Assembly: GCA_965649825.1 (NCBI GenBank)
Contig: OZ287704.1
Span: 728,301 to 792,300, forward strand
Length of the DNA stretch: 64,000 bases
Source of the DNA: Penicillus capitatus
Taxonomy: Eukaryota; Plantae; Chlorophyta
Direction of reading: 5' to 3'
Shown: in pieces, positions 1,235-57,189 of the stretch
Layout of the letters: each line of letters opens with the position of its first letter
Numbering within the stretch: the first letter of the stretch is position 1
Position numbers and translations under genes: made by a program
The notes under the pieces: model-generated
What the model was told of the DNA's origin: nothing
Databases searched by the model: none
What the model saw: only the letters and a program-made list of their open reading frames with translations

Positions 1235-4200
1235 ATGGAGCCACCCACAGCGCGACGAGGCGCCCTACTTTGCCTCATCTGTTTTTCTTTTCTCGCGGTA
1301 CTGCTGCCGCAAGCTACAGCAGAAGGTTTCCTTGCTGAAGAGATTCCACTCGAAATCGTTACCGTCACACCGTCGGCTCTTCTCGACGGCGGACGCGTTT
1401 CCGTTGAAGAAAAACAAACAATCACCGTACCCAAACGCACTTCTCTCGGAAAACAGTTGACCTTCGGTTATAATGGCTGCTTAGGCTGTCTTCAGCCGTC
1501 CCGTCATTGCGCTTGGGGCCGATTTCGGCGTCGAAGAATTGCCAGTCAATCTGGTTCCTTTCACGCTGTCGCCCGAAGTTCCCGGACGACTTCGCTGGGT
1601 AACGACCTATATCGCTCGATTCGATACGGACGAAAACTGGCCACTCGATCTTCATGTGACGCTAAAGTGGAATGCCGATCTCACGACATATGACGGTCGT
1701 GCTTCGGACATGTCCCTCGTGTGCTTATGGGCATGTCTACGATGCTGTAGGTGTCAAGCTGCTGCTTCCGAGTGGACCGACGGCACTTTTGAAAACGCCG
1801 TCGAATCGCATGTCCATTGAAGATATCGTCAGTCAGACGGCGAATAATCTTACCAGCAACAACTGGTCGGCATTCGACGGACTGGACTCTGATATTCTTC
1901 CGGAACGTGTTCAGGACGGTGCGCGCCCCGTTCATCTTCATCTACCAATCACTCTTCTATGGTTCTAGGTGTGATTGAACTGAAATTTGATGCGCCAGTG
2001 AATTTGGAAGTGTTGCAGCGGAATCTGAAAGCGAGTACCACAATAGTGGTCGAGGTGTCTAGATAGTGTGGTTGGTGCAGGTACGTCGTTACCTTACCCC
2101 GAACGACAAATCGGTGAAAGAACCGACAACCCTGAGGACATTCGTCAAGACATGTGATCCTGTGCGACCGATCCAAGATGCCGAAGAGAGCACCTGTGCC
2201 AATATCACCATTATCGCCGGACGCGTCCACGATGATACAAGGCACGTCCACATGAACGCGATACACTTAACAAAATTGACGATTCTTTGCTGTAGGTATG
2301 ACGTTTATATGGAGAAAGGCGTCAAGTACAGTGCACATCACGGGGCACTGAGGAAAGAGATGTCGGTGAGTTTTGGAGGCCTGCGCCCATTTAAACTGCC
2401 TTTCTATCTCTCCCGTCGTTCACTATCAACGAAGCTATTCGACATCTGGCTGCCGCACGGAACAGGCGTCGAACAGGATATCTTCGACATTCCCATCGTC
2501 CTGACCGACAGAGAGAACGGAACAGAGGTCGATCCCCGAGACGACCAGACATAATGGTGTGATCGGTATGGACGATAGGTTTTCTTCACAAGAGAAGAGA
2601 TAAGTCCATCTATTATGCGTCTAACAGCCGACGTTCATCCCGGGAAGAAATACAGGTGCATTTGACGATTTCTTTTTGGCGTGTTCATTGTTTGTGCAGG
2701 ATTCAGACGACTAACTCGACGGTGGCGCGAGATGGTTATGGACAGGAATTGGTGGCCACATCATTGAATTTCAAGACACAATCGATTCAAAACAGCTTCA
2801 GTCCCATGAGGTCTCAATATAATAACGAGATCGTTTTCGAGAAGGGGCAGAAATGGGGTTCCAATTTCGTACTGTTTACGAAGGGTGTGGCAAAGAAAAG
2901 GGAATGCAACACACTCAGTTTCTGGCCCATTGAGAATGTCACAGATGCAGCTGTGGTTGCTGTACACGGCTCTACATGGTCGTATGGCCGCAAGTCTATG
3001 GAGGACGCTCTAGGAGAGCCTATCCTGAAGGCAGAACCTTCTTTCGATGATCAACTGGGAAGCATCAACACCTACGACATGGGTCCTTTCATGAACAAGA
3101 CTGGCCTTGTCGCCGTCCAGCAGTGCAAAAAAAGAAGGTTCCCAAGCAGCAGTATCTCCCATATCGATCTGACAAATTCTGTGTGTTATATAGCTTTGGA
3201 TACAGATATAATTCTCTCTTGTCCGAGACAGACATCGCCGTTGCAGTCTTAACGTTCGAAATGAGAGAGGATGGACCATCTGCGTTCGCTTTTGTGACGG
3301 ACATGGCAACGGGGAAGCCCGTCAGCGATGCGTTTATTTCACCCTTTAAGGAAATCAGCAAAACTCTTGGTGTTCGTCAACTTGGCCCTCGTGTCAAGAC
3401 GAACGCCAGAGGAGTTGCACGGTTCACCATGGAGAGAACCTGGAATTCGAAAGTGGTTGTCGTCGAAGTGGACAGCCGTCTGACAGTTGTGCGTGACATC
3501 CGAGTCAACTGGATCAGAAGGGATACCATCTCTGATTTCTTGTATTTCGATAGAAAGCTGCTTCAGCCGAATGAGACGCTCTATGTGAAAGGCAAGGATA
3601 TTTTTCGCCCTTTCTTACACATCCTGTTCCATCCTGTGCAGGTTACATTCGCGAGAAGAACAAAACCGAATTCTCCGTTCGTGACAATCTCAATTTTCGA
3701 ATGGAAATTTACCCTCGCTTCGACAATGGCCCTAGAGCTATTAAAATCCCGCTGAATGTGTCTGGAGAGTATGGCAGTTTTGAGGCGAATGTGAAGATTC
3801 CAGAAGATGCCACATTGACGGAGTACTCCATTAGTGTCTCTCGCCACCAAAAATACGGCTCTTATCGCGGACGCAGCAAGAGCTTCACCGTCGGCGTTCC
3901 GAGAACACCGACTGTCGAGCTTGGAGTGAAGGCACCGAGGTGGGTTTCTCCAACTGGGGAAGCGTCTGTCACTGTCAAATCAGAAAGCTTCCTCGGTGCC
4001 TCTCTTGGCAATCAAGAGATTACAGTGGAGTGGAGTCTGTACTATGAAGCCGATGGCAAGGAGGTGGATCTCGATGAAACCGAAACCATCATCACGGACA
4101 ACAGTGGCACGGCTATCTTCACTTTAGACCTCTCCAAACTCCAACACGTTCCTCCAGTAGACAGTCGGATCTACTTTACCATACGTTGGGTTGGACCCAC

Positions 4201-7200
4201 CGGAGAGCTCATCGAAGAGACAGCGAACACAGAGATAGCGTGGGAAGATCTCTTCATCGCGCTGAGACGAACGGTATGGACAGAAGTGCCTCAGCAGCCG
4301 TTTGGTGTGTGGGTCGAACTGTCAGATCTAGACGGTGATGCTCTTCCAAAGGGAACGTACAAAGAAGCACAGATATACTTGAAGCAAGTGGCAGACGATG
4401 CCTTTTATGACGAGATGGATCGAGGATCTCTGGATGCAGCCGTCATTGAGACATGCACCTACCGATTCCATCACTCCGACCCCTGCCAGTTTAAGCTTCC
4501 GTCTATGAACGTTTTTGTCTTGGAAGCATGTATTACGCTCGAGCGTTTTGCTCTCTGTCGCCGGATTTCACTCGGCAGGCCAGAGACCAATTGGTCTGTT
4601 CGTCCATTGACGTCCTTCCTGCCGATGGGTATCTACACTGTCGATCAAAGTGCCTACAAAGCTGGAGACCCTTATGAAATCTTTTTCGACAATCCCTACG
4701 AGAATGCACACGCGATAATCGTGTGGGGCAACACAGAAGGCGTCCAGTATCGTGTCGAGAATCTCCCAGATCATCAGAGATCTTCTGTCGTTATCGAACT
4801 AGACGAAGTGTGCGAATACGGATGCTCCTTTGCAGCATCTGTGTCCATTCCACGCCAAACGACCGGTCTTGCCACGATGCTCACCGTTCCGATTTCCAAA
4901 CTACATGATCCAGCTATGCCACATACTGAATTCTGGCAATCCGACGTCCGTCTCGAACCCACCGAAGACAAAGACATTCAAATCGGTCTCAGCTTCCCTA
5001 AGGCCACTTCAGGCGACGTAGACGTTTTGCCACCTGGAGTAGTGACACGATTGGATGTCACTGTCGACCAGGACATGCCGACTGAAGTGACTGTTGTCAT
5101 AGTGGACAAAGCCATCCTCGAACTGATATCGAATCCTCTGCCTCGGATATCCGATTCCTTCGTGATTGACGCACTGTATAGATCTACCCACCAAACATCG
5201 ATCGACTACATGATATCACCTGGAGCGATTCAGGCGCTGTTAGAGAACTTCTCTGAGAAGAAGAAGATCAATGCTTGGTTTAACATCCACTCTGATGTAA
5301 GCCTTCAGTATAGTTTTGTCATCTGAAGCTGTGTTCTGTGGTACAGCTGCACAGGACTTCCTCTTCTTATGATATAGACGCCACGATAGATGCCTATCTT
5401 GAACAGCTGTCGCAGTACATCACCGTCCATCCTGTCAACGATTACGAACCCTCCTACGGGTATGGTTTATAAAGTCATCCAGACGATATGGAACCACAAT
5501 GCCAAATGTATCCGGACTAGGGTGACTTATGGAAGTGGGTACGCATACTACGACACTGAAGATATTTATGCATCCTTTACTACAGCAGAATTTGATCTAG
5601 AAGTTGGCGTAGAAGCTTATGAGGAAGCGACTATTCAAGCTCGTTCAGTAATAGCTTCTGCCAGACGAGAAGAAAAACCTCCCGCTCCGGTTGTCATCGG
5701 CGATGTGCGCTTAGAGTCGGAGTTCAGACCAAATGTCCTTTTCCATACTGAGATCGCCGAGGAAGGAAAGCTGTCCATCGAATTTGACACCCCGATCAAC
5801 TTGGGAACATTCGTCGTTCGTGCCCTTGCAGCATCCAACGAATCTGTTTTTGGAAGTGCAGAGACAGAGGTCGTCATAAGAAGAGACATCTCGGTCACAC
5901 CCTCTGTACCGAGATTCGTCCGTGTCAATGATGATTTCGACGCCGGTATTGTCGTGACGAACACAGGATCTCCAAAAGAGAAGATAACTGTCAGCGTCGA
6001 CACCGAAGGCCCCTTGCTTGTCATCGGTCGTCACGAGATCAGTGTTCGCACCGGCCAAGACAAACAAGAGTCTGTGCGGTTTCAATTCCGAGCTCAGAAA
6101 CTGGGCAATGCGACATTGACTTTCACAGCCGTCGACAAGCACGGCAATCGTGATGGTGTTCAAGTCTCGCTCCCCATTGAGGGACCACAGGAGTCTGTCG
6201 TCGTCGCAACATCTTTCGTTCTCGCAGCATCCGACACTCGATCCGGTACATCTCAAGAAGGACTCGATCTTCCAGAAGCCGTTCCTGGTAGCGGGACGAT
6301 CGAAATGACGGCAGGCGTTGGTCAGCAGCCAGCCGTTCTGAGCCTTGCCGAACAGCTGATCAAGCGAGATCCCGGTGTAACCTGTCCTTACACAGGTGGA
6401 TATCTCCTCAGTATCACTCTCATTCCGGCTATCATCAATCCCTATTCTCCCTGGGGAGAAGCATCTGGTCAGGAGGCGTTGACGAAGATGGTGATCGATG
6501 CCTTTCAAGTGGCGACGGATTTAATCTCTGTTGGCAAGGACAAAATGACACGTTCGTATCTTGGTCTGCTGCATTACCTTCCCTGTCCTCAACACAGATC
6601 ACAGTTTACACCGTCTCTAACGCTCCGGGACAACACAGAAGCTGTGTGGCTCTTCGATCAAGTTCAAGACCAGTACACGGATCACCCAGTGAAGATTGTG
6701 CGTCAGAAGATCGAGGATTTGGAAACGGCCAGAAAGGTGTGGGGCAAAGCAGCAGAGCGGCTCTGTGTGGAAGAGGCTAAAGACTCTCGAAAAAAGCTGG
6801 AGTTTCCTCTCGATCTGCACTCGGTTGCCCGGTGCCGCGCGGCACTGGGAACATCGTGGGAACCGGGCACCAATGTCCCCGATCAGATTCGGAAGGACCT
6901 TTCGATGAGTCGTCTGGAGAACAGTTTTAGTCGCATGGGATTGGAAGCCCAGGCATTGTACATTCTCACTCGCCTTAAAGCAACACCAGAGCATCCCGAC
7001 ATTGCCAAAGCAGTCCGAGAATGGACTGGTCTCTATCGAGTGACCGGCAGAACCGCCTACATCTCAGCTTATGAAGGAGCAGCCACTCCTGCCAGTATTC
7101 TGGCGAATGCCCTTATTCTGATGGCCATGACACGCGTCGGCGAGATTGGACAGCTGCTGCCCAAGCTTGCCACCTACGTTGCAGCTCCAGTGGGCGACTA

Positions 7201-8156
7201 CTATGGCTTTAGCTACTTCGGCAATTACGATATGGCTGTTGCCATGACTGCCCTCGTCGTCTACGACGATTCTCGAAACAACACGCAGCCAGATATCGAT
7301 TTCGAAGCCTTCAGTGGAGACGTCACACTTTTAGAGGTATCTGCCGTCAATGCATATATATCGTCATGCATTCTCACTCTTTCTGCAGGAAACTTTCGAT
7401 GAAGACTCATCGGCTATCGCCCAATCCACGACAGACTGGGATACCCTGGGCGATGAACCTGCCCCCATCAATTTTCGTGTGCAAGGATCTGGTGAAGTCA
7501 GTGTGGCCGTCGCACTCAATTTCATCCCAGCGGAAATTCTCCCCTTCCCTTCTTACAGAGGAATCTTCGTCCAGCGTTCCATACAGTTGGCAGATGACGC
7601 CGAAAACGGCGATTCTCTCTTGGCGGTCCCCCACGGAAGTATCGTCTTCGTCAAGGTGCAGTTCATGACACCAGATAGCCTGCAAGGAACGATCGTACGG
7701 GTTCTGATGCCTGCTGGACTGGAGCCTCTCGATCCAAACATCTTCGATGGCCCATCGCAATGTCCTGTGCCTTTTTTCGGATCCCTATCATTCTACTATC
7801 CGTTCCCATGCCCGTTCCAACAGACCCGACCCGAAGTGGTATCATTCGAGTTCGATTCCGTCCGTGCCGGGACACACTCCGTCGTTTTCAGAGCAGTCGC
7901 CGTGACAAGAGGTCACTTCACATTGCCGCCCACTCGCGTCTTTGTCAGAGATCAACCTGAGGTCATGGGACTCAGCAGTGCCGGTAGTTTCGAAGTGTGT
8001 GACGATGACTGCGATCCAGTCTTCGACAAGGAGTCGATCGAGGCTAAGAGCTGCCCGGATGACTGCAATGGCAATGGATCGTGCAATGTGAAGGAAGGCG
8101 CGTGTGTTTGCTTCAGGGGCTTCTATGGCAAAACCTGCAATCAGACGGCGTCATGA
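1235..8156 (+). CDS. Secreted bacterial-type alpha-2-macroglobulin-like protein with C-terminal EGF domain (about 2100 aa, 13 exons)
   Basis: Signal peptide ...FLAVLLPQATA. Ig-like ITAVFSRPVIALG, MG2-like LYFDRKLLQPNETLYVKG..GEYGSFEANVKIP, A2M-like EFRPNVLF..SVTPSVPRFVRVND, MG10-like LMPAGLEPLD..AVAVTRGHFTLPP, EGF CPDDCNGNGSC..CVCFRGFYGKTC. Introns 1427-1484, 1696-1750, 1919-1968, 2031-2080, 2242-2295, 2528-2578, 2656-2699, ~3181-3227, 3592-3641, ~5297-5348, ~5460-5520, ~7338-7389 join the ORF fragments in frame. Confidence 0.85.
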
Positions 8157-13219: not shown

Positions 13220-16200
13220 CTACACCTGAGGACGCGTCTGGACAACGGTAATGCTGCCGTCTTTGCTGACAACGCCCTCCACGTCCTGTGCTGATCCAAG
13301 GGCTTGCTCAATAGCGTATCCCACTTGACAGATCTTAGACAAGAGGTCGTTTCGAAATCGCCCGTCCTTGATCAGCCGATCGCCCACATAGTCCACCTTC
13401 CGCATCTCAGTGGTATCCATAGTAATGGATTCGTAGAGACCGGCTCCGGCATACCCTTCCAAATCCTCGCCGTTGGAATCCGATCGAAAAATGAGCGACT
13501 CTGTGACGAACATTCCGGCACTCTTGGAGGGGTAGAGGAGAACTTGGGGGCGATCCAGTTTGGCTTTGTTGGCCACAAAAGCCATCGAACTCCCAGGGAC
13601 CATTCCAGACACGAGCGACTCGCCCAGTCCCTTTACCAGCTCACAGTAAATCTCATCCTCCTTGCCGTTCGATGGATTCTTGGTGTGAATGACGAAAGCA
13701 TACTCTGCAGGAATGACCCTCTGAACGAGAACGGCCATTCTCAGGTCTTCGATTCTGAGACCCACTTTACGCATGGAGAAAAAAGCACGGTCATTGTACT
13801 TCGACGCCCACACTCCTTTCAGCGCCTCCACCGCCATCTGCCAACGCTCTTTAGATTCCGGGACTGGAATATTGGCATGCTGCATCAGCTGCTTGAGTTC
13901 AGACTCCAGCTCTTTAGGAATCTTCACTTGCATAACGAGCTTACGGCACTGATCCAGGATCACGGGCGGTCGATTTTCGACCTCTTTCAACTTGCTCTCG
14001 AGCTCTTTCTTAACCTCTTTGTTCGCTTTCAGACCCAAGACGTGTTCAAAGGTCCCGAAGGGAAGTGTAATAGAGGACGGCAGTTGGACCCAGTCTGGGA
14101 TCTTCTCACGCAGTCCAGCGATGTTACGAGATTTGGCACCGACGACTCCTTCGGCAAATTCGTCCATTCCCACAACGAATTTGCCTATCCATTTGGGCAC
14201 AGACATCTTCAGCCATCTCCTGGCAGTGCCCTCCGTGCCCTGATGCTCTTCCATGTCCATCTCCGTTTCGGAGACTTCCTCCCAACGAACCTCTCCCGAA
14301 GCAGCTGGATTGATGCGCAGAACCTTTCCTTGGCGTTTTTGGATCTCTTCCAAATGCCAACTGTCATGGCAGGCGGCGAAGAGCACATTCATGTTTCTGG
14401 CACGGACACTGACATGTGACAATACATCTGGAGCATCTGGTGTCAACAATGCCACGACTCCTTCGGGAATCTCTTCCTCCCCGCTCACACGTTTGGCCAC
14501 CATTACCGTCGGCTCCTTGTACACTTCATTTTGAAATTCGTGCAGATCTGGTACCACTAGGACACGTCCAATGGCAGTCACTGGACTGATGATCTGTGGA
14601 AAGGCAGTCGCAGATGAGGAGTCCGGTATGGAATGTGTAAAGGACGCACTTGCCAGGAACCCAGATTTGCTGCTGCTCGGAAGGCGCCTTCGACGTTTCC
14701 GAGCACCATGCTCAACGCAAATGCCGGTCCGCCACGAATAACCTCTTCCGCAAACAGCTGCACCGCCCAGTCCTCACAGCCAAATGCCGTTCCCATGAAA
14801 GCGGACGGGGAGCCAATCCGATCGAAGACGCGGTCCGACATTTCGGCCAAAGCTCTGCGGAGGCGATCGAGCACAGCTACCCCCTGTAATGCCTCTTCCT
14901 GATTGGGATATCCGTTCTTGATGGAATCGGGCAGTCCCTGCCATGACATCAGACAGAAACAGAGCTCTTCGTTGTCTCCAGCCGAAAGACAGAGATTCTG
15001 AAGCAGAGGCGTGATCAGTCCTGCTGCGGCCAAACCTGCCAATACACCACATCGAGGACATACAGAACATACAGTGGGTCATACCTGAAATACCGGCCCC
15101 ACGTTCTGCCGCTTTGCGAATTTGCTCTTCTAGTGCCAAATCTAGGTACATGAGATCTCTGTTTCCTGGAACGTGGTCGCGAATCTCCATGCGTGCTTCG
15201 ACGGCCGCTTCGAGATATGGCAGAATCTGAGGATCGTTCATGTGAGCCTGCACATACCTACATCAGTCACATCACACATTTATATGCAGATCACAGAGGT
15301 CGACTGAGAACCCGACGTAAGCCTTGGCGTTTCCAGGAAGCTTGTTCTGTACAGCTTGGACAGAAGCTTGAAAATCTGCTCCCGAATGCACGCTCTTCAA
15401 AATACCCAGATAGTTATACATGTCACGGATGAGACCATCCTTCTTGTCTGCATAGTATTGAGGATCTCCCACAACTGGCCGATCGTATCCCTCAACACGC
15501 TCACGTGTGATACCTACCATGACACCGTTAAAAGCGAAAGGGCCAGTGAGAGAGGACCTGAATCCGAGAGATGTCTCCAGTAGACGTCAGGATTGCCGCC
15601 GCTCTCCATGAACTTGATATAGGCCTCGCAGATTGGCACATCGTCAGGCGTGGTGTTGTTGTGCAGTTTCTGATGCCAGGCCTCGAGCCATTCTCCCTGT
15701 ATAGGAAAACTGAATCTGAAGCAGCTTTTGCATCGGCGTGTCTCTTACTCGCACTTCTTTGACTTTGTTACGGTGCATGATGTGAAGGATCTCGTCCCGG
15801 ATGCGTTGGCCATCCCCTCCTCGTCCGACAGTTGCCAGCATCGCCCGTATCCATTCCTGAGGTTCGCCCACTGTCTGTTTGTGTCCCTCTACATCACTAG
15901 ACCTCGTAAGGGAGTTCCATAAAATCACAGAGAAGCGTACGTGTAATGGACTGTGTGAGTCGATCCTGTGCATGGGCCAATTCTCGAGGCTTCGTGTTGT
16001 AGTTTCTCTGCCATGTCAACTGTCTCGTGGCACTGTAGCGCAGCCAGATGTACAACCGGGCTGCTCCATCAGCCAAACTGATATCTGAGTAATTGCCACC
16101 GACCAACTAAGACCAACACTTCACTCATACGAGGGACAAGACTTCAACAGAACACACGAACATTGTCCAGCATATCGGCAACGGTATGGAAACGATGCAT

Positions 16201-18211
16201 CAGAGTCCAGCCACTCTTGTTCACTTCCAGATCCACAATGTTCTGTGTCATTGTATCTTTGAATTCATCCACTTTCGGCATGATTGCTTTACTCCCCTTC
16301 GCCCCTAGAAACAAGGTCACACGATTACGATGTGTGTGATGAAACAGAAAAAGTGTGACCTGGTAGTGGGACGACGAAATTGCCGTGCCCATCTTTGTAC
16401 CATCTCGATCGATCCGCACTTCGCAAAACGAACAACACATTCGAGACGCCTGCATCCCATGGAACAATCAGTTTGGCTCTCTGAAGCGGAACGCGAGATC
16501 CGATCAGTTCAACATCGCACTCTTCTTCTTGACAATCTCCAAAAATTGTCTCTGCTGCTCTCTTGTCCTCCGTTACCTCTGTCAGGTGAGGCGGAAGAAG
16601 CTCTGCAGGAGGTGCATTCCAATCGCGTCCTTTTCCTGTCTTTGACACGCCCCAGTGCAATACGAAGGGAAATGCAGCATCTGTGGTGACGCTGACCGTG
16701 TAAGGCCCTTGCTCTTCGGATTGACTTACAGAAACGAACAGCTCCACATGCGAGCCAAGATTGTAAAGCCTTCTCCATTTAGTATTGGGATCGACTGCTG
16801 CATTCTGTACGATGTAGTCCATGGGCTTCTCTTTCGCTGTCTTCTTTTCTTCTGACAGCAATGGCACTTCAGAAGGCTTGATCAAGGCACGGACATCCAG
16901 ATCTTTGAGTCCTCTGGATGCACCCAACTCGACATCTTTAGGCGCTGCCGGAGGAGGACTGGGAGGCGGCTCCTCTCTCACTGCTGCTGCTGGTGGTGGT
17001 GGCTGCTTCTCTTTTTTCACTTCCGGCGGAGGGGGAGGAGGAGGAGCTGGTGGGGTTTCGACGACAGCGACAGGTGATGAAGGTTCGTCGAGTCGCTGTT
17101 GTTTTCGGAAATCTCGAAAATCCACTTCACCTCGACCAACCTTCCAAAGCTCGTTGAGACTTATGCCACTGTAGAGAAGATTCTTGATCTCTTTGATCCC
17201 GATCTGGTACTCTGCCGCTGCATCTACCTAAGCTCACAATCCCTGTCACATCACACAGCGATCCAGATCTCCCCCTACCTCTGAGCGATTGGGACATCCA
17301 GACACCTCCCACTTGAGATAAGCCCAAATGTCACACAATTTCTAAAGCCACACCGTGAGAAACATCGACGGCGACAGCGAGAGCGATCGTACGGAAGGGA
17401 TGTCGGGAATGGTCGTCACTTTCTCTTTTGTTGGCTTTAGTCCCATTGCAAAATTGCTTCCATTGTTATCGGACCATCGTCCACTCGCGTTATCTTTCAG
17501 CACAAAATTCAACACGTCAGACACTTCGTCTCCCCTCAGTTGAATATTTACAATCCCGCCTTCTGCTTCTCTCCTATCATGTGCATCCCATGTATCCATG
17601 ACAACCACCACACAACGATCGATGACGCCTTACTTAAACTGCGTTTGGAGGGCGCGGTTTTTGTATTGAACGGTGCCGTCAGGTCGACTTGCTTTTCCGG
17701 GCAGCCGCCATCCACCCTTGTAGTTCTTCCCGCCCTCCAATCCCCAATGCAGAATGAGATTGGGACTGGGGTAGTTGGTCTTCAGGTGAATGTCTTGCTC
17801 TTCATCTGATGCATGTACCACCACCTAGCCTCTTATAGAGTGAGATCTCGTATACAAAATTAAAACGCGTCATACTTTGATGTATTCGCCAGTGGGGAGA
17901 TGAAAATTCTTCTCCAAGACGGAACGCGTTGCCGTCGTCGACACAGCCAGTGGCACAAAGGACCGTTCTCGCGGATGTTCCCTCACTGGTAGACCGCGGT
18001 ATCCCCCGGGCAACGGCATTCCGATGAATCCCGTCATCCGACGGCGCAGCAAACGACATCGTCTGTTGGCATGACACGTCACCGTTCGTCTCAGATCTCT
18101 CGGGGCAACGCACGTGGTACATGGCAACGTCCAGAACGTTGGCCGTGTGCACAGCGTCCAAGACGGCTTTCCCACAGGAGACGTCTTCAGACGAAAGGTC
18201 GGACAGGACAT
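13220..18211 (-). CDS. GWD1: Alpha-glucan water dikinase 1 (GWD1/R1)
   Basis: CBM45-like LILHWG and FVLHWG modules, WLRYSATRQLTWQRNYNTKPREL, WHQKLHNNTTPDD, phosphohistidine DVLSHVSVRARN, and a PPDK-type C-terminus ending VVQTRPQV. About 11 GT-AG introns. The start could be a downstream ATG. Confidence 0.92.
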
Positions 18212-33655: not shown

Positions 33656-33866
33656 CGACGACACATACGAAACCCGAAACGGGAGAGATACGGTCGAAAT
33701 ACGGTCGGTGGTCTGTTCAGTGGCGACCACCAAGATGACGACGGTTGACACACTCTATCACGTCACATCATCGCGGTATCTTGAATCTCGTTTCCAACAG
33801 CATCGCTCGCTGGCTCCCCACATTCACTTACGTGCTTGTTAGTTCGTGTGTGCGCGTTTGGACACC

Positions 33867-35165
33867 ATGATGCGTGAAGGAGTCCAATCGATCAAACGAC
33901 CTTCGGATCAGACACTCGAAGAAAAGCACCACGTTTCTCAGCCTCTCGGTAGCGCTGGTCAGGCGATCGTCAGGACCGAGGCAGACCAGACGGTGCCATC
34001 TCAAACGACCTCGCCTGTCCCTTCGCATCGAACACTTGACACTTCACCGTTTGGCGCCTGGCCGGCAACAAGTCCTCATCCTACACCCGCTCTCCATTCC
34101 TCCACTAACCTTGGACACGAATTCGGCGCGAATGCGACGTCAAGCATGTCGGAGGGCAACACATTTCTCCAGCGCATTGATGAATGGCGTCAGCTGGCCA
34201 CAACGATGCCCAAGTCACATCACTCGCTGTCTCCCTATGCTGCCATTCCTCACCGTTCTGTGGTTTCCAGTTGGTTAGACGCGCTCAAGGCAAGCGTCTT
34301 ACATCATTGCTTTGCCTCTGATCTCTCACTGCCCAACCGGATGGATGATGTGACGGATGCTGAGGTCACTGAGTTTGTTGCCTCACTCAATCCGCCGCCC
34401 TACTTGACGGGACACCAAAGGATGCTGTTCTCTGAGCTGCTGCAGAACATGGAGGCGTGGTGGAGTTCCAGTTTCGGCGTCATGCAGTCCATCCATGAAG
34501 ACAGTGTGCAGATTATGGGATTCGATGCCTTGCCCGTACCTCCCAGTCCACTGCCGATGCAGATCCAGCGGCGTCTCAAAATGATCTTCCGTTCCGTCAT
34601 GCAGCTCATGAGAATTCCACCCGCCCCTGCGAACATGTTAGGCGGGAATTCGGCGGCGGAGGATGTCTCTCACCCCTGTGCACCAGACGATGTCCGTTTC
34701 TGGAGAATGCTCGGCCAAGAGCACCGCAACAATCCAAAGATGGTGCTCAGGGAATGGCTCTTTCAGCATTTCGATCGTCCCTATCCCACAGATCAGGACA
34801 AGCACTTGCTGTCCAGCATCACGGGACTCTCAAGGACGCAAGTGTCGAACTGGTTCATCAACGCCCGTGTACGCATTTGGCAACCGCTGGTCATGGAGTT
34901 GGGCAAAGAATTGGGAGAACATGAAGATATGGGTGACTCTGCTGAGGAAGCATCGCCTTTGGGACTGAAGGTCGAGGTAGACCATCAGAGATTAGTAAGA
35001 GGGAGCGTTGTACAAGAGAGTGATCATCTCTCACCTGTCACATCGTACAGAGATCTCACATCTCAGCCGTTTTGCACTTTCGCCACTGCTCCTGCTGGCG
35101 TCGCTGCCGTCATACCACCTGAGTCGCCGGATCATGCCGGAAGCGCTCACTCAAAATTAGAGTGA
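33867..35165 (+). CDS. TALE homeodomain transcription factor, BELL class (intronless)
   Basis: [48 protein letters not shown] has the PYP loop and the BELL-type WFINARVR. Confidence 0.9.
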
Positions 35166-49516: not shown

Positions 49517-50692
49517 TTAGCTGAGTTCCGTCGTGAGCTCGTTATCGATAAACTCATCGATGAGTGAATCGGGGAACTCGACGTTCATTGGATCGGCACC
49601 CAATCGGACGCTCTGGATGATCTCTTTGATCTCCTTCTCACTCTGACGTTTCTCAACCTGTCACATCATGCTCACTCTATGGCATTGAGATTCCGAGGCG
49701 GATGTCGCACCTGCTGCATCATGTCGGAATCGGATCTGAGAAGCTGATCATTCATTTGGAGTGCAGCAGTTGGCAGACGTTTTTTGAACCATGGATGATT
49801 GATGATCTGTTCGATCGAAAAACGGTTATGCACACGGGAAAGGCATCCCTTGATCAAATCCACGGCACCCACGGAGAGGAAACTGGGCAGACGATAGTTG
49901 AGTTCCCGAACACGTGACCGGACGATCTCTTGGTAACGGGGATCGCCAGCCGGAACATCCCGAGGAGAAAACGGATACTCGCCAACAAGCATCACATACA
50001 AGACGACCCCACATGACCACAGATCGTATTTCTGAGCTTCGTATTTCATACGGTCCACATTGTTAATCACCTCAGGTGCCATGTAGTCGAGCGATCCCAC
50101 CATCGATCTGCACAAACGAACATCTCACCAACTGCCCATGCACAATGCACCATCATGACGTCGGATCCGATTGGACAGCTTCCATGCAGGAGTAGCCAAA
50201 ATCGCAGAGCTTGAGCAGGGGACACTTTGAACGACCATCATGATACTGCAACAGAAGATTCTCGCATTTGATGTCCCTTGATGCCACGCCTCTCTTGTGA
50301 CAGTAATCCACTGCCAAGATGAGTTGCTGAAACATCGTTCGTGCATCGTTTTCTGTCAGACGGCCCCGACTTGCCACAAAATCGAATAGGTCTCCACCGT
50401 TGGCATGCTCCATGACAATAACCAAATACCCAGGAACGGCAAAACATTTTTTGTATTCGATAATATGTGGATGGTGCAGTGCTCGGTGATTGAGAACTTC
50501 GCGTTCGAGGTTGCGCATCTTGGCGCCACCTGTGACAAATTTGAGTGCCACGTGTCGACATTTGGCTGCGTCCAATGCTTCGGCGACCGTGCCGAAACTT
50601 CCATTCCCAAGCACTCTCACTAACTGGTAGCGCGGCTGTGAGCGCAAAAGGTAACTAACTTTTTTGTGTTCGAGTTTTCTCCCGCCTGTCAT
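49517..50692 (-). CDS. SnRK2-like kinase, tandem copy A
   Basis: LGNGSFG, EREVLNHRALHHPHII, VASRDIKCEN, LCDFGYS, SMVGSLDYMAPEV, SnRK2-box-like QSEKEIKEII. Two introns. Confidence 0.85.
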
Positions 50693-51119
50693 TTCGCTCT
50701 GGCTACAAGACACCGACAACGGCGAAGATTATCGTTATGCACAGCTGAGTTGGCGGATTTGATAATACGAAGCGAATGAGAAGGCTGATGAGGCAAAGAA
50801 ACGAAGAACGGTTGAGGTGACGTTCGATTATTCTCTCGACAGGGAATGGATCAGCGTCTGCAAGTTGACCTCACTCTTTTGCTCTCTCTCACTCATCGGG
50901 AATTGGACAGAGATGCCAAAAGCAGTCATCCTCTTCATTATCATCAATAACAACAAGAAAGTAGACTGTACTTAAACACAACACTCAAGCCACGAGATGC
51001 AGGCAGACCAGTAAAGCAGCAAAACAACCGGTATAGAGGTAGAGACGGCGTTAAAAGTTAATCTCTTTCGTCCGTTACGAAAAAGCAGATCCACGCGTCA
51101 CACTTTGGAACAGCGACAG

Positions 51120-52247
51120 TCATTCTTTTTTGTTGAGCTCATCCGACAACGTCTCTTTGATCCAGCTCTCCGTGAGTGGTCGGGAGAAGGGTTTGGATGG
51201 CTGGTTTTCGGAACGGGCTCTGTTGAGAATGGCCAGAACTTTTTCCTTGCTTTGGTAGCGCTCCACACGTGCCATCGTCTGAGAATCGAGTTTCATGATA
51301 TCGTCGTTCATCACCTTTGCTTCGGGGGGAAACTCGACGAGAAACCAGGGGTCTTCAAGGATTCCTTGAATAGAGATCCGATCTCTGGCAGAACAGAGGC
51401 ATTTCTTGATCAAATGACGCGCTTCGCGTGGCACGAATGACGGGAACTTGTAGTTCAGAGAGCAAATGCGCCGTCTCAGGGCGTCAATAAATTCGGCACT
51501 GCGGCGGTCCATGTCAACGGGCGAAAAGGGATACTGACCCACGAGCATGATGTACAAGACGACGCCGCAAGACCAGATGTCGGCTTTGACAGGATCATAG
51601 GTCTGCATGTTTTGGTTAGCAATCACTTCCGGTGCCATGTAATCCGAAGATCCCACCATCGATCTGCACAGACCGCCGCCAATTAGAGAACAGAGAGAGC
51701 AAACATGTAAGGCGGCGTACTGAGGGTCACTTTGAGCATTTTCGTCGTGAGAGTAACCAAAATCGCAGAGTTTTACGATCGGTGTGTTGCAGCCGTGGTT
51801 CAGAAGAATGTTCTCACACTTTATATCGCGAGAAGAGACGCCTTTGCGGTGGCAGTAATCGACGGCAATGATGAGTTGCTGAAAAATCCATCGAGCCATG
51901 TTGCAATTCAGTCGTCTGCAGCGCTTCACGAGCTCAAAGAGACTGCGCCCGTCTGCATACTCCATCACGATGGCGAGATAGCCAGGCACAGCAAAGAGCT
52001 CGTGGAGTTCGATGACGTGAGGATGGTGGAGCAAACGGTGGTTCATGATTTCGCGTTCGGGATATTTCTTCTGTGTCAGAAGCGACCGTATAAACTTGAT
52101 TCCCACTTTGCGTCGCGTCTTTAGGTCTTCCGCCAAAACCACCATTCCAAACGCACCGCTGCCAAGAATACTGACAGCATGATAACGCGACTGGTGTTTC
52201 AGAATGTCGCGGACGCGATGCAAATCGACGGAGATTGCTTCCGACAT
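51120..52247 (-). CDS. SnRK2-like kinase, tandem copy B
   Basis: LGSGAFG, EREIMNHRLLHHPHVI, VSSRDIKCEN, LCDFGYS, SMVGSSDYMAPEV, QSKEKVLAIL. One in-frame 57-nt intron is read through by the ORF track. Confidence 0.85.
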   Translation of the reverse strand: MSEAISVDLHRVRDILKHQSRYHAVSILGSGAFGMVVLAEDLKTRRKVGIKFIRSLLTQKKYPEREIMNHRLLHHPHVIELHELFAVPGYLAIVMEYADGRSLFELVKRCRRLNCNMARWIFQQLIIAVDYCHRKGVSSRDIKCENILLNHGCNTPIVKLCDFGYSHDENAQSDPQYAALHVCSLCSLIGGGLCRSMVGSSDYMAPEVIANQNMQTYDPVKADIWSCGVVLYIMLVGQYPFSPVDMDRRSAEFIDALRRRICSLNYKFPSFVPREARHLIKKCLCSARDRISIQGILEDPWFLVEFPPEAKVMNDDIMKLDSQTMARVERYQSKEKVLAILNRARSENQPSKPFSRPLTESWIKETLSDELNKKE

Positions 52248-52398
52248 CTTCTCCGAAGACTGTTTTGTGGAGTTAATACACTAAACGCAAGGCACCACCG
52301 TGCTTCGTATGATGATGAAATGTTACAACCGTTCGCTCAAAAGGACGATGCATAAACTGTCGTCAATGGACACGTGATGCATACACATTAAACAGCGT

Positions 52399-53580
52399 TT
52401 ACAGTCCTTCAGTGGCAGTGTCGGTGTGAACAGACGATGATTGCTCATTCTTAGAATACTTTCGAAAGTCTTCGTCGATTTCTTCATCGATCACACTGTC
52501 GGGTACACAGTCACGTTGTCGCTTCACCTTGTCAAACCACCCGGCTCTCATGATTTCATTTTCGACCTCCTCATCTGTCTGCCAATCGGTGCCCGGAGGT
52601 ATGCAGTTACGTTTCTTTTCTTCCTCTATCAGCTCGTCGTTCATTGTCTGAGCGCCGTCTGGAAAATTGCGACCGAACCAAGGATGCTGTATAATCTGAT
52701 GGATGGAGAATCTCTCGTCTGGTAAGGTTAGAATGGAACTGATTAAACTGTGCGCTTCGCCTGATAGGTGTTCAGGAATTTTATAATCCAGAGCGGCCAC
52801 TTTTTTTCTTATGGAGGCACGGCCGGCGACATTCGTCCGGGGAACATGTTTACGGGTAAACGGATAATGTCCAGCGAGCATCACGTAGAGTACGACTCCA
52901 CATGACCAAATATCTGCCTTCATCGCATCATAGTGTGAGGCATCGTCTTTGCTCATCACTTCAGGCGCCATGTAATCCACAGAACCAACCACAGACCTGC
53001 GACACCATCACGCTTGTCAGACATAGGCATTGGACCCAATGGGTCAGTTGATGACATACCTCGCTCCTTCTCTCGGGGATGTCGATTTAGAATAGCCGAA
53101 ATCTGACAGTTTCACGATTGGTAGTCGGTGCCCTCTTATCAACAGAACGTTCTCACACTTGATATCCCTGGAGGCAATGCCTTTGCGATGACAGTAGTCC
53201 ACGGCAAGTATCAGCTGCTGGAATATCCATCGAGCCAGTGGCTCACTGAGTCTTCGATTCATCTTGACTAGACGAAAGAGACTCGACCCGTCGGCGTACT
53301 CCATCACAATAGCTAAATGACCGCCCACTTCCAACACCCGGTGAAATCCAATAACATGAGGGTGCCGCAGGATGCGATGATTCTGAACCTCGCTGCAGAG
53401 GTAATCGTGCATTTTGGAGGCGTGCACAAACTTGATCGCCACGACTTCTTTGGTGCGAGTATCGTTCGCCTTGACGACTGTGCCGAAGCTGCCGCGTCCA
53501 ATTATCTGTTCGACTTCGTATGGCAGTTTTTTCCGGGACAACTGTGTCCGGACGATGGATAGATTCAAGTCATACTCCAT
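52399..53580 (-). CDS. SnRK2-like kinase, tandem copy C
   Basis: IGRGSFG, SEVQNHRILRHPHVI, IASRDIKCEN, LSDFGYS, SVVGSVDYMAPEV, QTDEEVENEI. Its intron is at the same position as in copies A and B. Confidence 0.85.
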
Positions 53581-54973: not shown

Positions 54974-56260
54974 TTAATCTGTTTTCAGATGTTTCTGCAC
55001 CGCGCCGTCTTCTCCAAAGAAATGCCACCATACAAAAGTCCACAAGGATCGCAACGCCTCTCGGGAGAGATGTTCTTCTCGCAGAGAGGCAGGGGGTGAT
55101 GTGACAGTCGTCGGCTGTAAGAAATAGGTATCGATGGCTGAATGCAAACGATGGGTGATAAGGTGTACAGGAGGCTTCCAGTCGATCTGTTTCTTCTGTG
55201 CGATGTCTTCAACCAAAGCAGTGACGGCGACATGTGCAAAGGGACTCCACTGAAAGGGCAGCAGACGATGGATGCGCTCACATGAGAGCCCCGATGTCAA
55301 GAGACAGTCAAGATAGGGATTCTTTGTCAACGTCACATCAACGGTGGAATAAATGATGCCTCGTGGCCAGTCAGCCTCTGGAGAGGCATGATCGACCGGA
55401 ACACATGTGGCAAGCATCAGAGAGAGCACTCTCGTCAAGAGGAACTGTGTCATCCAGAACGACATTTTCTGAGCAGCGATGAATTGCCAGATCTCGATTG
55501 CCACCAACATTCGAGCGAGTAAACATCCAATGAACTGATAGAAGGTATTGACAGATGGGTGCTTGAAGAAGAGGTGAAAGCAGCGCAAAGGTGTCCAGCA
55601 GGATGTGAGAACGGATAGGAATCCGAGACACGTGTCCATTGGAATGCGGAAGCCGCGAGGAAGCTGCTTCAATTGCGCCACGTGTTGCGGTTTGGAACAC
55701 ACCGTGGCAACGGTGGTCCTCGCTTCGCCTCGGTAGTCCATTTCAACAAGGTGACTGAGAGTCACGTTAAGCAGAGATGCCTTCTGAAAGGCGAAGCTTC
55801 TCCCGCTGGCGGCCAGGCAGATGCGCGTTGCTGCCATCCAGACCGCATAGGGGATAAGTTTAACATCTCCCTCCACTGCCCTCCAATGGAGATACGCTCC
55901 GAAAACAACGAGCGTCAACAGTACGGCGGCGAAGGCGATGTTGCTAAGGATAACAGATTCTCGCCACTTGTGCTCGGCGAGGTGCTCGTGCACTTCTTGC
56001 AAGAATCCGGTGTCGTCGCGAAAACTGTGTGGTCCGTCGACCGTCTCTGTTTCGACGGCATAGCAGGAAAGGAGTGCACGCAGACGCGAAGATTGGCGAT
56101 GCCGCGTGTGAAAAAGCGTTGAGATATCCTGTCCGCGTGTTCGATAAATAAAGACAGCACCGCCGGGATGGTGTTGGGCAAAAGACTCGAGGTCGTAAGC
56201 GACGCCATCAATCGACCAGTAACTCTCGGCTGTCCTCTTGGTCGCCGTCGTCATCATCAT
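54974..56260 (-). CDS. Cytochrome b5-fused fatty-acid-desaturase-like protein with degenerate His boxes (intronless)
   Basis: b5 domain WSIDGVAYDLESFAQHHPGG..QDISTLFHTRH, TM segments, and C-terminal DVTLTKNPYLDCLLTSGLSCERIHRLLPFQ. The likely start is the ATG run at 56260-56252. Confidence 0.75.
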   Translation of the reverse strand: MMMTTATKRTAESYWSIDGVAYDLESFAQHHPGGAVFIYRTRGQDISTLFHTRHRQSSRLRALLSCYAVETETVDGPHSFRDDTGFLQEVHEHLAEHKWRESVILSNIAFAAVLLTLVVFGAYLHWRAVEGDVKLIPYAVWMAATRICLAASGRSFAFQKASLLNVTLSHLVEMDYRGEARTTVATVCSKPQHVAQLKQLPRGFRIPMDTCLGFLSVLTSCWTPLRCFHLFFKHPSVNTFYQFIGCLLARMLVAIEIWQFIAAQKMSFWMTQFLLTRVLSLMLATCVPVDHASPEADWPRGIIYSTVDVTLTKNPYLDCLLTSGLSCERIHRLLPFQWSPFAHVAVTALVEDIAQKKQIDWKPPVHLITHRLHSAIDTYFLQPTTVTSPPASLREEHLSREALRSLWTFVWWHFFGEDGAVQKHLKTD

Positions 56261-57189
56261 CAGATATCGAATTGTATCACTTTCTGAACACGATGTTGGC
56301 GCAAATGCACACCCGCCATCTGCAAAAGAATGCGCGATGCTTCGTACATGGACGCATCCCTCTTTGTCTTCTCCTGAAGTCAATGGGAATGAATGCATAA
56401 GACGTCAATCGGTCAATGTGGTGGCAGGTGTACTTCATAGTAGATGACCTCACGGATGCCGGCCTGTATTAGTAGTTTAGCACACTCGCAGCATGGAAAC
56501 AACGTCACGTACATTCTCTGCACAAAAGAGAAAGTGTGAGATGTCATTGAAGTGTGCGTGAGAACTGGGGGTGACCGAGTTCTTGAGGTCGGCGCTGTTC
56601 TTGTTCAAAATTGCGTTGGCTTCGGCATGGACGACGAAGGGATACTTCGTGTCAAGGGGATTGTTGTTTCTCGAGCGTTTTGCCCAGGGAAGTGCCGAAT
56701 CTGGACATCCACGTGGGAAGCCATTGTAACCGACCCCCAAAATGATGTTCTGGTTGTCCACAATACAACTCCCCACCTACAGACAACGACGCCTTAGAAG
56801 TGCTCCTATCCTTGCTGCCTACCCAATACGCACCTGCTTACGCGGATCTTTTGATCTTTGTCCACTGAGAAAAGCCAGAGTCATGAAGTAATCGTCGATG
56901 GAAAGGTATCCCTTTCTCGCTGCGATATCGAAGGGATCGACCTCAGGCTCTTCCATCACCGTTGCACCGTTCCCGTGTCCCGACGACGCCCGAACAGTGA
57001 CGATCGGTTTCTTCGACGCCGACGCCTCTTCTTGTTTGACACCCTTCCGCTTTGTGCCCTAAAGCCATCGACGCGTCCATTCCTTCCGCGTCGCAAAGGC
57101 AGGGAGCAGTCGACGTTGAGAAACCGTTCGAGGATGGCCGCGATGCAAACAAGGAGGATGGAGACAGAGATACCAGCGACAAACGGCAT
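56260..57189 (-). CDS. DCTD: dCMP deaminase with N-terminal hydrophobic anchor
   Basis: [68 protein letters not shown]. Four GT-AG introns. Last exon 56373-56260 ends ..VIQFDI-TGA. Confidence 0.92.

Follow-up and report, generated by a model that had tools for sequence, protein, structure and literature searches.

Alpha-2-macroglobulin (A2M)-type protease traps are a textbook part of animal innate immunity and have counterparts in the bacterial periplasm. The thioester motif CxEQ is not universal in the superfamily and is absent from complement C5 and from the type II A2Ms. In the type I bacterial A2Ms, represented by YfhM of Escherichia coli (ECAM; PDB entries 5a42, 4ziq and 4rtd) and by the A2M of Salmonella (4u48), macroglobulin (MG) domains are followed by the bait-region domain (BRD), the A2M domain (MG7), the thioester domain (TED) and MG10. 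The gene pbpC abuts yfhM in E. coli K-12. The type II proteins, MagD of Pseudomonas aeruginosa and YfaS of E. coli, have no thioester and keep a bait region. In MagD the bait region is cut and the protease is then held non-covalently without a thioester (PMC5764988; see also PMC3735191). The gene described here lies in a 64-kb stretch of the genome of the green alga Penicillus capitatus (GenBank assembly GCA_965649825.1, contig OZ287704.1, positions 728,301 to 792,300), which is called the window below. We are nearly certain that the gene encodes a protein with the identity and architecture of a secreted, thioester-less member of the A2M superfamily. To the whole statement, namely that it is a functional chlorophyte gene of a thioester-less A2M family and that its product acts as a non-covalent protease trap, we give an even chance.

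Domain architecture and the missing thioester

The window protein is 2086 aa long and starts with a hydrophobic segment (aa 5-30) that ends in PQATA followed by EG and agrees with a signal peptide cleaved behind PQATA. A C-terminal hydrophobic tail and transmembrane segments are absent. The signal peptide holds two Cys residues, neither of which is in a lipobox context. The homologs likewise begin with a signal peptide, which is followed by the conserved motif GFLxxELPLE. The protein is predicted to be secreted. The mature form (228 kDa, pI 4.9, 24 Cys residues, 17 N-x-S/T sequons) is predicted to be an acidic secreted glycoprotein.

The search of the full protein against Pfam returned bMG10 (PF17973, E 7.5e-16), A2M (PF00207, E 2.2e-11; 43.9 bits, cut-off 21) and EGF_2 (E 8e-6). 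Matches below the cut-offs of their own families were obtained for MG2 (5.5e-7), A2M_BRD (1.8e-3) and bMG3 (0.018). Across nine family members, A2M_BRD was detected in all nine, MG2 in eight, bMG3 in six and Big_5 in four (best E 1.1e-4). The raw translations of the open reading frames (ORFs) had also matched A2M (1e-11), bMG10 (8.5e-17) and EGF_2; their matches to bMG3 and A2M_BRD were weaker. A2M_recep, TED_complement, ANATO and C345C gave no Pfam match at E<=1 in the full protein, and the NCBIfam scan gave no matches. The single-sequence search of the PDB returned an EGF match only. The family profile, however, matches the MG10 domains of 4rtd, 5a42 and 4ziq at about 2e-6, and for the N-terminal half bacterial A2Ms are the sole PDB matches obtained by sequence profile.

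The structure was modelled with AlphaFold2 in two parts. The C-terminal model (aa 1227-2086), calculated from a 12-sequence alignment, has a pLDDT of 76.7 and consists of about 69 disordered residues, beta domains, a helical domain of about 315 residues, further beta domains and a small EGF domain. Foldseek aligned it over about 760-890 columns with C3, CD109, the Salmonella A2M, ECAM, A2ML1 and C5 (E 1e-25 to 1e-30). The helical domain was laid over TED-containing chains by both Foldseek and hhalign. The N-terminal model (aa 30-1226; pLDDT 66, pTM 0.44) is a string of beta sandwiches. Its best Foldseek matches are ECAM (4.6e-21) and the Salmonella A2M (1.1e-19). The MG1-MG6 rings of C5 and C3 come next; the beta-chains of these two proteins align over about 650 columns with TMt 0.39-0.49. 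The first ~450 residues, three Ig-like domains and a linker of low model quality, are without a counterpart in E. coli YfhM or YfaS, where the hhalign alignments start at profile column ~500. At the other end, the EGF domain closes all nine green-algal homologs with printed C-termini and is missing from some others, such as P0037 of Dunaliella. As modelled, the protein shows the complete architecture of the A2M/C3 superfamily, including a helical TED-like domain.

The domain order Ig-like, MG2, A2M, alpha-barrel and MG10, which the sequence-only reading of the window had proposed, was thus recovered by Pfam and by the models, and the A2M and bMG10 matches uphold the superfamily identity. Its cleavable signal peptide without a lipobox Cys agrees with the single hydrophobic segment and with the context of the two Cys residues. 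Its designation of the protein as a bacterial-type A2M holds in part. The term is justified by bMG10, by bMG3 and Big_5 at the family level and by the exclusively bacterial PDB sequence matches of the N-terminal half, but it does not extend to the thioester of the type I proteins.

No C-x-E-Q was found anywhere in the 2086-aa protein. In the alignment of all 79 hits of the first search, the residues CPYT (6383-6394) stand where bacterial A2Ms read YPYxCxEQ, and hhalign lays the stretch containing CPYT over YPYGCLEQ of YfhM. Among the sequences that cover the site, the motif is present in none of the 55 sequences that come from eukaryotes or group with them, compared with 19 of the 22 bacterial hits. 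A further 129 representatives contain six CxEQ strings, none of them at the site of the thioester, and the MG10 motif CPEQ accounts for four of these strings. These alignments show the loss of the thioester extending across the whole eukaryotic clade. A covalent thioester trap of the YfhM type or of the type of the thioester-containing proteins (TEPs) would agree with the fold and with the domain order of the type I A2Ms. Such a trap is very improbable, however, and is refuted at the level of sequence, given that any C-x-E-Q is lacking, that CPYT occupies the aligned position and that there is neither a lipobox nor a PbpC neighbour.

The comparison with the type I proteins reveals both likeness and distance. 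The order MG, BRD, A2M/MG7, TED and MG10 is the same, YfhM is collinear with the family profiles over 611 and 588 columns (hhalign E 4.6e-8 and 8.3e-9), and the type I structures are the best Foldseek matches of the N-terminal half and among the best of the C-terminal half. In contrast to them, the algal protein has no CxEQ, no lipoprotein anchoring through a lipobox and no pbpC partner. It carries an additional N-terminal Ig-like region of ~450 aa and a C-terminal EGF domain, and it is eukaryotic, encoded by a spliced gene and predicted to be secreted. Its identity to YfhM/ECAM and the Salmonella A2M is 15-20%. The earlier label "YfhM-like" is wrong in the chemistry that defines type I, because CxEQ is missing; the family is moreover about equally distant from the type I and type II proteins of E. 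coli by hhalign.

With the type II A2Ms the algal protein shares the absence of the thioester and the retention of a bait-like region. YfaS of K-12 matches the N-terminal family profile at 1.3e-9, compared with 8.3e-9 for YfhM. The yfaS gene of K-12 is annotated as a pseudogene (L006, 7799-12403), in which only a 1372-aa N-terminal ORF is open. The comparison of type I and type II over the C-terminal half is uninformative because of this truncation. No counterparts of the mag and yfa partners (MagA, MagB, MagC, MagE and MagF; YfaP, YfaQ, YfaT and YfaA) were present among the flanking ORFs and the large ORFs scanned in the window. Descent from type II proteins is not demonstrated, because the thioester-less bacterial hits are scattered among the thioester-bearing ones in the tree.

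The metazoan proteins A2M, A2ML1, CD109, insect TEP1 and complement C3/C4/C5 have the same superfamily fold (Foldseek 1e-25 to 1e-30 for C3, C5, CD109 and A2ML1). Metazoan TEPs are secreted or anchored by glycosylphosphatidylinositol (GPI), as are outer members of the clade, and C5 resembles the algal protein in having no thioester. The algal protein differs from the metazoan TEPs in its bMG10-type terminal domain and its Big_5-type Ig-like domains, and it has no A2M_recep, ANATO or C345C match.

The CAGE proteins, of about 2,300 aa, occur in protists, green algae and Gram-negative bacteria, and some of their beta-sandwich domains resemble the MG domains of A2M. They are described as a novel fold that assembles into hollow tetramers, were purified from cilia and from soluble cell lysate, and are reported to be absent from Chlamydomonas reinhardtii (bioRxiv 10.1101/2025.09.22.677704). 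The A2M family, in contrast, is present in C. reinhardtii (P0012 and P0036), and no CAGE entries are found among the top 50 Foldseek hits. An identity with CAGE was set aside on the published description, the distribution in C. reinhardtii and the Foldseek lists.

Distribution and origin of the family

The best match of the window protein is P0001 of Caulerpa lentillifera, which shares 44% identity over 99% of the length; P0002 is a second relative from this alga. Bryopsis sp. KO-2023 has six family proteins, five of which are encoded on one 3.6-Mb contig with close locus tags. P0004-P0008 are BSKO_12537, 12538, 12539, 12547 and 12549 of this strain. The Bryopsis paralogs indicate that the family has expanded in tandem in this alga, which is siphonous and heals wounds. 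The other green relatives are found in Acetabularia, C. reinhardtii, C. incerta, C. schloesseri, Gonium, Volvox, Edaphochlamys, Dunaliella, Tetradesmus, Scenedesmus, Monoraphidium and Hariotina, so that the family spans the Ulvophyceae and the Chlorophyceae. Outside the green lineage, relatives come from the glaucophyte Gloeochaete wittrockiana, Picozoa sp. SAG31, the diplonemid Artemidia motanka and CFRG6822T1, which we take, from its locus-tag prefix alone, to be the ichthyosporean Creolimax fragrantissima. The non-green members derived from transcriptomes could conceivably stem from contamination, but this is unlikely to be the general explanation in view of the gene model from the ichthyosporean and of the metagenome contigs. 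No metazoan proteins were among the sequence hits. In UniProt, family members bear the automatic names "Alpha-2-macroglobulin domain-containing" or "EGF-like domain-containing protein". The homologs derived from transcriptomes show that relatives of the gene are expressed. The window protein itself has the features of the clade, namely the signal peptide, the GFLxxELPLE start, the Ig-like domains, the A2M domain, a TED without CxEQ and bMG10.

A neighbour-joining tree was calculated from 1665 trimmed columns, and support was counted as bipartitions, the replicate trees being arbitrarily rooted. The bipartition of all eukaryote-type sequences was recovered in 100/100 replicates, as were the core chlorophyte group, the group of the window protein with Caulerpa and Bryopsis, and the pair of the window protein and Caulerpa P0001. 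The phylogeny with bacterial and algal A2Ms that the sequence-only reading had called for yields a single eukaryotic clade. When 1.84 billion cluster representatives (50% identity) were searched exhaustively with a profile, 13,118 proteins scored E<=1e-3; of these, 1,400 reached E<=1e-30, and the top 150 all had E<=1e-83. Many of these entries are fragments of spliced genes.

Four deep-branching members, P0050, P0054, P0055 and P0056 (loci L003-L005), lack introns, and each is one continuous ORF on a eukaryotic contig. Instead of an EGF domain, they have at their C-termini either a hydrophobic tail that resembles a GPI signal or a transmembrane helix plus a cytoplasmic tail. On the contigs of P0050, P0054 and P0056, the neighbouring genes encode leishmanolysin, P450 and IRX15/GXM on one, longin and synaptobrevin on another, and kinases on the third. 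The Peptidase_M8 (leishmanolysin) gene lies about 3.5 kb from P0050, and a single EF-hand gene separates the two. P0050, P0054 and P0056, the deepest metagenomic members, were considered as a possible bacterial sister or donor and rejected, since their contigs carry eukaryotic genes. The identity to the sampled bacterial A2Ms is 18-21%, and no close bacterial donor was found among these sampled hits.

On this evidence from sequence comparison, the gene is assigned to a large, monophyletic, thioester-less eukaryotic A2M family of bacterial type, and the family is old and widespread and no private acquisition of one alga. It may go back to one ancient transfer, to several transfers between eukaryotes or to an ancestral eukaryotic origin. 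An ancient horizontal transfer or retention had been suggested by the sequence-only reading; "ancient" fits the data, while a lineage-specific transfer does not agree with the broad monophyletic clade. That reading had also allowed for a broad, already characterised chlorophyte clade, which would lower the novelty of the gene. The clade is indeed broad, but it is not characterised. A 2014 survey of plant peptidase inhibitors gives I39, the MEROPS entry for the A2M fold, for Micromonas pusilla only (PMC4189545).

Gene structure, integrity and locus

The gene model was obtained by homology guidance, with the closest homolog, Caulerpa P0001, as the guide. On the forward strand, long open segments with short gaps between them extend from 1235 to 8156. 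The start codon is the ATG at 1235, which is preceded by an in-frame TGA (1229-1231) with no other start in between; the last base of the stop codon is at 8156. The resulting gene has 13 exons, 12 introns and 2086 codons. Intron length ranges from 44 to 80 nt, with a mean of 55; ten introns are of the GT-AG and two of the GC-AG type (Table 1). The GC content is 0.51 in the exons and 0.46 in the introns, while that of the window is 48-53% throughout. The window contains a single copy of the gene. The limits given by the sequence-only reading were exact, its count of 12 introns is that of the model, and its estimates of about 2100 aa and of ~50 nt for the host-style introns come close to it.

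The need for an intron at the site of intron 4 follows from the in-frame TAG at 2064 in the window and from a downstream in-frame stop in a near-identical metagenomic contig, L002 (ENA ERZ25074695 ctg340196, 302 kb). This intron differs from its L002 counterpart by four substitutions in 80 nt, an intron-like rate. Several alternatives were rejected. A candidate GTGAGT intron at 2366-2434 is coding, as the segment VSFGGLRPFKLPF is conserved in Caulerpa P0001, and a 14-nt micro-exon proved spurious in comparison with the same protein. Automatic dynamic-programming models that minimize introns or prefer the shortest ones removed coding sequence and missed the GC-AG donors. Two GC-AG introns out of 12 are an unusually high share for a single gene, which might be a trait of the spliceosome of this alga.

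Table 1. Features of the A2M gene and of the neighbouring GWD gene (window coordinates)
Feature	Position	Strand	Remarks
Signal peptide, aa 1-29	1235..1321	+	MEPPTARRGALLCLICFSFLAVLLPQATA followed by EG; sole hydrophobic segment of the protein
Three Ig-like beta-sandwich domains, aa ~38-405	1346..2841	+	Split by introns 1-7; AlphaFold2 model mf026edfbe6b9, block pLDDT mostly 70-88
Intron 1	1427-1484	+	
Intron 2	1696-1750	+	
Intron 3	1919-1968	+	
Intron 4	2057-2136	+	80 nt; length fit to Caulerpa P0001 and P0002; least certain junction
Intron 5	2242-2295	+	54 nt, in frame, GC-AG; removal gives exact length match to P0001; GC donor kept in L002
Intron 6	2528-2578	+	
Intron 7	2656-2699	+	
Intron 8	3138-3193	+	
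bMG3-like (aa 533-596) and MG2 (aa 619-720)	3279..3892	+	Pfam; fastest-evolving folded part
Intron 9	3592-3641	+	GC-AG; between bMG3-like and MG2; GC donor kept in L002 and L001
Further MG domains and A2M_BRD (aa 971-1131)	3914..5125	+	Pfam, Foldseek; bait-region domain
Intron 10	5297-5346	+	
Bait-like linker, aa ~1201-1295	5383..5728	+	Disordered, hypervariable; spans introns 10-11
Intron 11	5460-5520	+	
A2M domain (MG7), aa 1299-1384	5738..5995	+	PF00207
Helical TED-like domain, aa ~1495-1810	6326..7273	+	No thioester; helices at model residues 269-584
C-terminal beta domains	7292..8003	+	Pfam; include bMG10 (aa 1889-2016, 7560-7943)
Intron 12	7337-7388	+	
EGF-like domain, aa 2053-2081	8052..8138	+	Six Cys; EGF_2 8e-6, EGF_Teneurin 1.1e-5
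Alpha-glucan water dikinase (GWD)	13223-17125	-	Plant-type Ig_N_CWD1; ~43-50-nt gaps between exons

The locus was found on two long eukaryotic contigs from independent metagenome assemblies. L002 is collinear with the window and 99.07% identical over 14.4 kb, and L001 (ENA ERZ26696514 ctg303451, 368 kb) is collinear at 80-86% identity; they probably represent the same species and a congener, respectively. On both contigs the genes were predicted with a prokaryotic gene caller, and the predictions break at each intron. All 12 splice-site pairs, GC donors included, and the reading frame are kept in L002. Between the window and L002, substitutions amount to 1.3% in the exons and 3.6% in the introns. 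The exons contain one indel, of 3 bp, and a 2-bp indel lies in an intron. L001 covers 1563 codons with an open frame, the same four introns and exon indels that are multiples of three. The ratio of nonsynonymous to synonymous substitution rates (dN/dS) between the window and L001 is 0.29. This shows that the gene is under purifying selection overall.

The ORFs that were scanned, both close to the locus and elsewhere in the window, belong to eukaryotic genes. The neighbours of the A2M gene are an EF-hand-thioredoxin fusion (22-612) and a protein kinase gene. The A2M introns are host-style because the gaps between the exons of the nearby GWD gene are of similar length. Together, the intact frame, the kept splice sites and the eukaryotic neighbours therefore exclude that the gene is a contaminant, a chimera or a pseudogene. 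The bacterial flavour of bMG10, bMG3 and Big_5 might raise the suspicion of contaminating bacterial DNA, of a chimera in the assembly or of a recent transfer from bacteria into this lineage alone. Such an origin is extremely improbable and counts as refuted in view of the 12 spliceosomal introns of host size, the eukaryotic genes on both sides, the presence of the locus in L001 and L002, the identity of only 18-21% to bacterial A2Ms and the monophyletic clade with relatives across many algae and protists. The exclusion of bacterial contamination by the sequence-only reading is borne out by the introns, the neighbours and the two assemblies. Decay into a pseudogene would be suggested by the TAG at 2064 if intron 4 were retained. 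It is nevertheless highly unlikely, as the ORF is intact in the window, in L002 and in the part held by L001, the sole indel that is not a multiple of three is intronic, and the dN/dS is low.

The other ORFs scanned encode protein kinases, GWD, a TALE homeobox protein, adaptin, a CCCH zinc finger protein, a cytochrome-b5 fusion and a transporter of the major facilitator superfamily. The GWD gene is a useful marker of a starch-storing green-lineage host. The nearest named relatives of its exon are chlorophytes, Apatococcus (61%) and Chlorella (57%). In the A2M tree the gene stands beside the Bryopsidales; for the GWD exon, the nearest named sequences are from Trebouxiophyceae. By these sequence affinities the host is identified as a core chlorophyte. 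At least three adjacent related protein-kinase ORFs at 50153-52992 (reverse strand), with the motifs HRDIK and SRDIKCEN, look like a tandem array of similar Ser/Thr kinases; one of them was scanned with Pfam. The TALE-class (Homeobox_KN) homeodomain gene is located at 33846-35165 (forward strand), and the cytochrome-b5 fusion, with multiple hydrophobic segments and a desaturase/hydroxylase-like character, at 54974-56398 (reverse strand).

Possible function and significance

The stretch between the BRD and the A2M domain is a disordered, hypervariable linker of ~95-170 aa. In the window protein its pLDDT is below 50 over residues 1-69 of the C-terminal model. It is the least conserved stretch of the family (conservation 0.24-0.30, gap fraction up to 0.39) and the most divergent one between the window and L001 (pN 0.55, 22 gap codons). 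Its position and behaviour are those expected of a bait region, and we regard it as a putative bait.

Fast evolution is also seen in the N-terminal half. The window and L002 differ by 45 nonsynonymous and 28 synonymous codon changes, and 32 of the 45 nonsynonymous changes cluster in aa 327-754 (2600-4000), in the Ig-like/MG part. They include a GPRA>RRGD block in the MG2 domain (aa 666-669, 3678-3689). Between the window and L001, dN/dS reaches 0.83-0.87 over aa 625-744. The clustered changes, the window of high dN/dS and the Bryopsis tandem array hint at an arms race.

We propose that the protein is an extracellular non-covalent protease trap or decoy of the MagD type, a function that we rate slightly below an even chance. 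After export to the cell surface, the wall or the medium, the linker would be cut by an attacking protease. The MG ring and the TED-like domain would then change their arrangement and so retain or shield the protease without a covalent bond, as in MagD. The C-terminal EGF domain, in the non-green members the GPI-like tail or transmembrane helix, may tether or cluster the protein at the surface. A putative role in algal defence or in the response to wounding is plausible.

Several points weigh against a trap. Members of the superfamily without a thioester can have non-inhibitory functions, as C5 does. MagD acts within the multi-protein Mag complex, and the algal locus has no counterpart of it. 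The N-terminal model is of modest quality (pLDDT 66, pTM 0.44), and aa ~409-514 are unmodelled. The windows of high dN/dS could mean relaxed constraint instead of positive selection. Evidence of expression comes from transcriptome-derived homologs in relatives, and in the searchable literature no paper describing or testing the family, and no experimental datum for the clade, was found.

The main rival reading is that the A2M fold has been put to another extracellular use, in scaffolding, adhesion or recognition, as in the thioester-less C5 of animals; we think this possible but less probable than the trap. The protein might then be a component of the matrix or cell wall, a factor of cell-cell or gamete recognition, or an opsonin-like binder. 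The absence of the thioester throughout the clade agrees with a non-trap function. So do the acquisition of an EGF domain, a GPI-like tail or a transmembrane anchor, as is usual for proteins of the surface or matrix, and the long N-terminal Ig-like extension peculiar to the clade. Motifs particular to the TED-like domain are strongly conserved, and the invariant R-T-A-Y among them suggests a conserved binding function other than thioester chemistry. On the other side, the long, disordered, hypervariable linker is kept at the exact position of the bait, and the MG ring, TED and MG10 needed for a conformational switch are all retained. Trapping is also possible without a thioester, as MagD demonstrates (PMC5764988).

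With the large, monophyletic, thioester-less eukaryotic clade, which is undescribed in the searchable literature, the A2M fold appears in a third setting beside animals and bacteria. The family is already visible in public databases, though uncharacterised, and is present in the model algae Chlamydomonas and Volvox. If the window protein is only a structural surface protein, its gene is an ordinary, though very large, matrix gene. As a protease trap it would be a testable component of extracellular defence in algae, and Chlamydomonas mutants would be a tractable system for the study of trapping without a thioester. It would also add data to a long-standing problem, the direction in which A2Ms passed between eukaryotes and bacteria. 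An ancient, eukaryote-wide family of secreted or surface-bound thioester-less A2Ms, with members in Chlorophyta, Glaucophyta, Picozoa, Diplonemea and Ichthyosporea and with hundreds of divergent metagenomic clusters, might even form a protease-trapping, fast-evolving layer of innate defence in algae and protists, which we offer as a speculative and rather unlikely extension. If it is true, animals and bacteria are not the only organisms with macroglobulin-type immunity, and both the origin of the A2M/TEP/complement superfamily and the direction of transfer between bacteria and eukaryotes would have to be reconsidered.

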